The notes under the pieces were generated by a model that was given only the letters and a program-made list of their open reading frames with translations, made no database searches and was not told the DNA's origin. From contig JAWQFM010000002.1 in assembly GCA_033442325.1 (NCBI GenBank), positions 2,101,044-2,165,043 of the forward strand: a DNA stretch of 64,000 nucleotides, read 5' to 3'. Shown here piece after piece: positions 34,000 to 36,646 of this stretch. The stretch is from Salpingoeca rosetta (lineage: Eukaryota; Protista; Choanoflagellata). Positions within the stretch are counted from its first letter, which is position 1. Every line of letters starts with the position of its first letter. A program made the position numbers and the translations under genes.

Positions 34000-35243
34000 A
34001 TGTCCAAGGAGACCCCTCAGCTTGGCCCCGACGTGAGTTGTGCATGACCTCCTTAAGCAATGTGTCTTACATGTTTGCGTCTGTGCTGATTGTCTTCATC
34101 TCCACACTCGCACACACACACACACACACATCCAACGCGCGCACACCATTGCCGCCTTGCTTCGCACGCGTACTCACCACGACCACCCTCCCCCATGCTT
34201 GCTCCAATCAGGTCAAGGATGGCGAGCTCGTCTTTGGCGTTGCACACATCTTTGCGTCCTACAACGACACTTTCGTTCATGTGACTGATCTTTCTGGAAA
34301 GTGAGTGAAGCGGCGCCTCATGCTTGTACATCACATCACAAGACTCCATTTGTTACTACGTGCTTGTCCTTGTGCGTTGCTTGTCTTTGTCTTTGTGTTT
34401 GTTTCGTGTTATCGTAGTGCTTCGATCGATCCTGTATTTATGCTGCCCTGTGGAGCTGACAACATCTCACCATTTCGCTTTGACTTCTTGTCCTCGTGCT
34501 TAGGGAAACCATGGTTCGTGTGACTGGCGGTATGAAGGTGAAGGCCGATCGCGATGAGGTACGTCGCCAGTTCATTGTCACCTGCCACTTTTTTCCATGT
34601 GTGTGTGTGCGTGGCGTGTGCGTGTGTGTGTGTTTTCATCGTGTGGCACCACGCTGCTCTCGTTTGCTTTCCTCCCCGTCTGCACTTCTCTCCGCCGATT
34701 CCCTCCTACTTTCCCCTTTTTCTCATCTTTGCATTGCGTTTTTATGTGCTTGTGTGCGTGCTTGCGTGCGTGTATGCAGTCGTCGCCATACGCTGCGATG
34801 CTTGCCGCCCAGGACGCCGCTGCCCGCTGCAAGGAGCTCGGCATCACCGCTCTTCACATCAAGCTCCGCGCCACCGGCGGTGTGCGCTCCAAGACCCCTG
34901 GCCCCGGCGCGCAGTCCGCGCTCCGTGCCCTTGCCCGCTCTGGTCTCCGTATTGGCCGTATTGGTGCGTTCAAACTGTGGTGTATGTGTGTTTGTGTGTG
35001 TGTATTCGTGTGTGTGTGTTGTTTGCTGCAGCTTGCTGTGGGGTTGCGTGTTGTTGCGTGTTGCGTGAGGGTGTGCACGTTCCGTGCTCGTCCCCCGAGT
35101 CCCTGTTTCTCCTTGCAACGCATGGCTCACATACCTCCACCCACCACGTCAATACCATCAACAAACAATTGGCAGAGGATGTCACTCCCATCCCCAGCGA
35201 CAGCACAAGGAAGAAGGGTGGTCGCCGTGGTCGCCGTCTGTAA
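34000..35243 (+). CDS. RPS14: 40S ribosomal protein S14 (uS11), 5 coding exons
   Basis: [24 protein letters not shown]|[18 protein letters not shown]|[12 protein letters not shown]...[18 protein letters not shown]...[22 protein letters not shown]. Confidence 0.97.
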
Positions 35244-35638
35244 ACCACACATGCACGCACACATTTTGGCTTTTTGGTCCCCAGTTCTTGGTGTGTGAGT
35301 GGCGGCGTTGGTGATGATGTGTTTGTCTCCTTTACTTGAGATGTACGTGTGCCATGACGGTTCCCTCCCTCACAAGTACACGTGCATCAACGGACAACCG
35401 ACCACGTATTCGAGTGTCTGTGTGTGCTGGTTGTGGTGAAACCTCGCGGTTGAAAACTTGCGCACATTAATTTGAGTGCAGCGTTTACTTGTCTGTGATT
35501 GTCACGAGCAGAGCGTAGAGTGGGGGAAGGGGACAAGGGGTGTTTGTTGGGAATGCAGAGATAGAGAGAGGGGGGGGGGATGGAGCGAGTCAACACACGC
35601 ACAGACAAGACAGACACGTGAACACACACACAAACAGT

Positions 35639-35681
<43 letters not shown>

Positions 35682-35726
35682 AAACACACACACACACACA
35701 CACAAACAGTCAAACACACGCGGCAT

Positions 35727-35987
35727 CTAGTCGTCGTCTTCCTCTGGCCTCCAGATGTCGTTGTCTTCCACGTATTGTACAATGTTCTTTGCCGCCGAGG
35801 CACCGGCATACACCACTGTGGGAAGCACAACGGTGATGCCTGCAAACACAAGAACGCTGGCCTTGCTTGGCATCTGGGGAATCAGGTCGTGGCCAGACAA
35901 GCCGCTTGTGGACCGCCGCGCAACCAGCGCAGCGCCGTTTGGCCTTGCCGCACTTCTCGCGGCCCGCACAAGCGTGGTTCCAAGCAT
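35727..35987 (-). CDS. SMDT1: EMRE/SMDT1-like essential MCU regulator (86 aa, single exon)
   Basis: Arg/Ala/Ser-rich, acid-free presequence, then LIPQMP, one TM helix ending YAGASAAKN, and acidic tail YVEDNDIWRPEEDDD*. This parallels animal EMRE ILPKP...YVGTLISKN...LEEHDIFVPEDDDDDD. Confidence 0.8.
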   Translation of the reverse strand: MLGTTLVRAARSAARPNGAALVARRSTSGLSGHDLIPQMPSKASVLVFAGITVVLPTVVYAGASAAKNIVQYVEDNDIWRPEEDDD

Positions 35988-36646
35988 GGTTCTGGGTGTT
36001 GCAAGAACGAGCGCAGACAAAAAAGGGTCAGCAAGGAAAGACGGCCAGCAGCGGAATGGCCAAAGGCAAGGAGGAATCTCAGTCAGAGGGTGTGCGTGAT
36101 GAGTGTGCGTGTCGTGGGAGGTCAACAAGGCCAGGAGGTGAAGGAGGAGAATTGAACGATCGGCAAGTGCGGGAGAGCGCAGTGTGAGAAGAACACACGG
36201 ACAGCATGGACAACGCAACTACAAGACCACCCCAGTGCTTTCATGGCGCAGGCAGGCACGGGAGCAACGCAAACACCAAACATGCACACGCACGCACACC
36301 CATCCAAACATCACAAACACCACCACCACAACAACACACGAACCTCCTCTTCTTTTTCCTCTCTTCCTTCTCGGCTTGCTTGGCAATCAAAATGAAGGCT
36401 CGACTATTCGCGGAAGATATTCGTAATTTGTGCCGCACACTCAAAAAGGCAAAAGGGCAGCAGCCAAACCGTTCACTCTCCACTCACCACCTGCTTGGTT
36501 TCATGTCAACGCAGTCCACGTTGTTCGCCCGCCAAGCAAGCCAGCAGCCAAGTTCTCGCGTCAGCACGACTCACCTCACTTGGGAGCCAAAGCAAGCAGC
36601 ACTTGGGTTCATAGTTGGTGTGCGGGTGCATCTGCGAATCCGAACC

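Follow-up and report, generated by a model that had tools for sequence, protein, structure and literature searches.

The window analysed here, a stretch of 64,000 nucleotides from Salpingoeca rosetta, carries on its minus strand, at positions 35727-35987, an open reading frame of 86 codons from ATG to stop, followed by the stop codon. We are confident that the product of this frame is the orthologue, in S. rosetta, of EMRE (SMDT1), a subunit of the mitochondrial calcium uniporter that spans the inner membrane once. S. rosetta is a choanoflagellate and as such belongs to the Holozoa, being a close unicellular relative of the animals.

Directly after the EMRE stop codon follows a microsatellite of the (CA)n type at 35622-35719 (Tandem Repeats Finder: period 4, 24.5 copies), which is interrupted by AAACAGTCAAA units and probably lies inside the EMRE 3' UTR. 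Similar CA/TG tracts occur in many spacers and introns of the window and also at the MCU locus described below. Such CA-rich spacers could suggest a trypanosomatid, for which an EMRE would have been novel; this reading was rejected, as the neighbouring ribosomal protein S14 gene and the MCU gene contain introns and the identical protein is that of S. rosetta. Further along lies a ribosomal protein S14-like gene with an apparent intron (approximately 34597-35243, plus strand). It and EMRE are arranged tail-to-tail, with some 480 bp between its end and the EMRE stop codon. On the other side, an ATG-led open frame begins at 36393 on the plus strand (MKARLFAEDIRNL...), 13 bp beyond the start of the EMRE transcript and on the opposite strand. 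Neither of the raw RNA runs has any coverage at 36402-36450, and this frame may not be a gene.

Transcript and gene model

RNA evidence over positions 35727-36450 came from four runs, namely two with raw RNA-seq reads (X21 and X22) and two older ones that are kept as contigs (X13 and X15). All four report a junction between 35991 and 36344, which reads CT..AC on the plus strand and is carried by 90 reads in X21, 32 reads in X22 and one contig of 322 nt each in X13 and X15, the latter two contigs reaching 37 nt beyond 35727. The gene consequently consists of a non-coding first exon of 37 nt without any ATG (36344-36380, minus strand), an intron of 352 nt with GT..AG borders (35992-36343) and a second exon, whose coding part (35727-35991) opens with AACC, runs from the ATG to the stop codon and continues into the 3' UTR below 35727. 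Over the EMRE frame, X21 reaches a depth of 100-300 and X22 one of 40-130; the intron is covered at a depth of 2-12 in X21 and of 2-20 overall, which is consistent with a small amount of unspliced precursor. In almost all reads over the frame the first mate lies on the plus strand, a pattern that points to minus-strand RNA in stranded libraries of the usual type. In X21 as well as in X22, read ends accumulate at 36380, so that transcription likely starts at about this position. Within the intron, at position 36174, four reads of the minority mate orientation in X22 show G instead of A, as opposed to none of the 12 reads in the main orientation, a number too small for interpretation.

In the spliced mRNA the first AUG stands at position 42 and corresponds to the ATG at 35987, and since the reads join the non-coding stretch 36344-36380 to 35991, this first AUG yields the protein of 86 amino acids. 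The deposited product PTSG_01435 is 89 amino acids long and consists of MLT followed by the same 86 residues. Such an MLT start can only be obtained via a mini-exon of 5 nt at 36207-36203 with a GT donor, and at the report threshold none of the four RNA runs gave a junction for this mini-exon, the only reported junction being 36344/35991. We therefore rejected the 89-residue start, as the read junctions support the non-coding exon at 36344-36380 instead. The expressed product is most likely the 86-residue protein and the deposited first exon of PTSG_01435 most likely a prediction artefact.

Parts of the protein and family membership

The N-terminus (residues 1-30; 35898-35987, minus strand, as are all parts that follow) resembles a presequence by composition alone, with five Arg/Lys, no Asp/Glu and 13 Ser/Thr/Ala among the first 30 residues. 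It is followed by a juxtamembrane proline motif, P37-Q-M-P40 (35868-35879), which lies N-terminal of the helix and in the phmmer alignments to the PDB chains 6o58_L and 6xqn_E pairs with the human P-K-P, the EMRE chains having a gap of one residue here. Hydropathy and alignment place a single transmembrane helix at residues 45-66 (35790-35855); it represents the sole hydrophobic stretch of the protein, with the best 19-residue Kyte-Doolittle window at residues 45-63 (mean 2.13). At the helix end, G62-A-S-A-A66 (35790-35804) matches the human G-T-L-I-S column for column, such that G62 and A66 stand opposite the human Gly and Ser, and GXXXA/S/G is an accepted conserved form of the EMRE helix motif (PMC7423614). 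The subsequent K67-N68 is identical in human EMRE. The protein ends in an acidic tail (residues 74-86, EDNDIWRPEEDDD; 35730-35768), which aligns with EEHDIFVPEDDDD in human and EENDLFVPSDDDD in Tribolium EMRE. Eight of the last 20 residues are acidic, the C-terminus reads DIWRPEEDDD, and its EEDDD end, preceded by EDND, pairs with the aspartate tails of human and Tribolium EMRE. All motifs which a sequence-only reading had listed for this frame are found in it.

The Pfam profile PF10161 (DDDD, the EMRE family) matches the 86-residue protein with 28.2 bits (E 1.5e-6) over profile positions 14-74 of 76. This score is 1.2 bits above the curated gathering cut-off of 27 bits, with nearly the full profile covered; scores close to the cut-off are typical for the short and poorly conserved EMRE/DDDD family. 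A six-frame search of the genome (55.4 Mb, 68 contigs) with the same profile recovers the frame at 28 bits. It also gives a second match on contig 29 (419969-420133, minus strand; 27.6 bits), which covers only profile positions 8-62. As an EMRE paralogue this match was rejected: it is an I/L/V-rich low-complexity frame inside an open frame of 979 codons, lacks the acidic tail and is to be counted as a false positive, the DDDD profile being short. The opposite strand of this match would read as an acidic stretch rich in D, E and N.

Against all PDB chains, phmmer returned EMRE chains only, namely Tribolium castaneum EMRE (6XQN chain E) as the best pairwise match (E 4.8e-5), human EMRE (6O58 chain L; E 8.4e-5) and, as the remaining matches, two shorter human EMRE constructs. 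Together with the profile score above the cut-off, these matches bear out the proposal of an EMRE homologue in a non-animal. The human chain aligns over S. rosetta residues 15-86 and shares the order of parts, from the presequence-like N-terminus via the proline motif to one transmembrane helix with a small-xxx-small motif, and then K-N, D-I-aromatic-x-P-E and an aspartate run. No gap interrupts this alignment between the tyrosine that precedes the glycine and the C-terminus, and it retains the aspartates as well as the columns Y-x-G-x-x-x-[S/A]-K-N and E-[E/D]-x-D-I-[F/W]-x-P-E. The Tribolium chain, likewise an animal protein, shares A-x-S-K-N-I and E-[D/E]-N-D-[I/L]-[W/F]-x-P with the S. rosetta protein, the alignment having two one-residue gaps around the transmembrane helix. 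Because these specific columns are conserved, the match to EMRE does not merely reflect a hydrophobic stretch with an acidic end. The S. rosetta protein differs from its human counterpart in length (86 versus 107 residues) and in having GxxxA and PQMP where the human protein has GxxxS and PKP. The acidic tail is indeed shorter, as had been noted before, since the human chain extends two residues past the aligned DDD, whereas the S. rosetta run is EEDDD.

A homologue of 81 residues (P0002) with 57% identity to S. rosetta EMRE is found on 25 contigs of environmental assemblies, presumably from another choanoflagellate-like organism. Its last 15 residues are identical to those of S. rosetta EMRE, and the helix core PTVVY-x-GAS is common to both. 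As this homologue conserves the C-terminus and the helix core, the EMRE protein appears to be under selection.

Uniporter genes in the genome and earlier surveys

The sequence-only reading had proposed a search for MCU in the same genome, and an intron-split MCU gene is found there. On contig 30 the MCU profile PF04678 scores 44.4 bits at 418160-418432 and 37.8 bits at 418692-418754, both above the cut-off, and an intron separates the two pieces. The open frames at this locus contain a transmembrane segment, and the exon that follows has the pore motif WDLMEPVTYF with the WDLMEP selectivity motif, the transmembrane region being spread over at least three exons.

The EMRE gene had been suspected to be missed by annotation and possibly unreported, neither of which is the case. 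A word-based protein search found a 100% identical protein of 89 amino acids from S. rosetta, the hypothetical protein PTSG_01435, which exact look-up assigns to EGD80849.1, XP_004997410.1 and UniRef100_F2U0C1, and for this database entry the PF10161 match is already precomputed. Furthermore, PF10161 at the gathering threshold served Pittis et al. (2020; Nat Commun 11:4031, PMC7423614) for a survey of 1156 eukaryotic genomes. In their Supplementary Data 1 the entries for S. rosetta are EGD80340, EGD80277, EGD80849, blank and EGD75575, with EGD80340 listed as MCU, EGD80277 as MICU and EGD80849 in the EMRE column. The same column is filled for Monosiga brevicollis (EDQ91579) and Capsaspora owczarzaki (KJE89364). 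A full-text literature search gave one further paper, a survey of calcium channels in diatoms. S. rosetta EMRE is thus already annotated, already listed in that paper and not new. What the present analysis adds to prior knowledge is the expression evidence and the corrected 5' exon and start codon only.

The notion of an EMRE outside animals, in a protist, holds insofar as the host is a non-animal; it loses its force insofar as this host is a choanoflagellate and hence belongs to the Holozoa, for which EMRE is expected and already on record. In the paper of Pittis et al. (2020; PMC7423614), holozoan EMRE serves as the baseline, and the headline is that EMRE occurs outside Holozoa, in chytrids. 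The chytrid EMREs have an additional domain at the C-terminus, absent from Holozoa, and the S. rosetta protein stops at the acidic run. EMRE-dependent uptake was reconstituted with chytrid MCU/EMRE pairs, EMRE dependence was placed at the opisthokont ancestor, and MCU, MICU and EMRE were argued to be the ancestral opisthokont uniporter, with the holozoan MCUs representing the animal-type paralogue (PMC7423614). Whereas the chytrid pairs have been functionally tested, the choanoflagellate EMRE is known here from sequence and transcripts.

Predicted function and evolutionary meaning

By homology with the solved animal complexes, the putative presequence would bring S. rosetta EMRE into mitochondria, where its transmembrane helix would pack on the transmembrane helices of MCU via the GxxxA face. 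The proline segment before the helix, on the matrix side, would help to hold the MCU pore open, and in the intermembrane space the acidic tail at the C-terminus would tether the calcium sensor MICU1. On these grounds we infer for S. rosetta a putative mitochondrial localisation, binding to MCU and MICU and a requirement of the protein for calcium uptake; its MCU would, to judge from sequence kinship, depend on EMRE.

From our point of view, two other explanations can be imagined, of which the first is the main rival, namely that (i) the protein is a true EMRE homologue that is not needed to open MCU and acts only as a tether or modulator of MICU, strict dependence having arisen later or being weaker here; or (ii) there is no kinship to EMRE, and a single-pass microprotein of another family, or a frame open by chance, resembles the short DDDD profile through its hydrophobic stretch and acidic end. 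The first would fit the shorter acidic tail, the replacement of PKP by PQMP and the finding that non-opisthokont MCUs such as that of Dictyostelium function without EMRE (cited in PMC7423614); it is nevertheless improbable, because EMRE dependence is seen on reconstitution even with the chytrid MCU/EMRE pairs, whose divergence is older (PMC7423614), and choanoflagellates moreover branch within the opisthokonts and keep the GxxxA and K-N columns. The second is already largely refuted and has very little left to recommend it, for although the profile is short, the score lies near the cut-off and the same profile produced the spurious 27.6-bit match on contig 29, nearly the whole profile is covered, including the Y-x-G...K-N and D-I-W-x-P-E columns, the frame is the first-AUG frame of an abundant spliced mRNA, and it is conserved in a second organism (P0002) and co-occurs with MCU.

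Taking the protein as the EMRE orthologue, one could speculate, with some reserve since we consider it unlikely, that the shorter acidic run and the PQMP insertion go along with a coupling of MCU and MICU unlike that of animal EMRE, for example with weaker gatekeeping. If this were true, choanoflagellate EMRE would represent an instructive intermediate in how the regulation of the uniporter evolved.

Overall, S. rosetta EMRE has little significance beyond confirmation, as it is already catalogued and expected for a holozoan. S. rosetta is genetically tractable, and as such it could serve for testing EMRE dependence in a non-animal, an idea that follows directly from published work.
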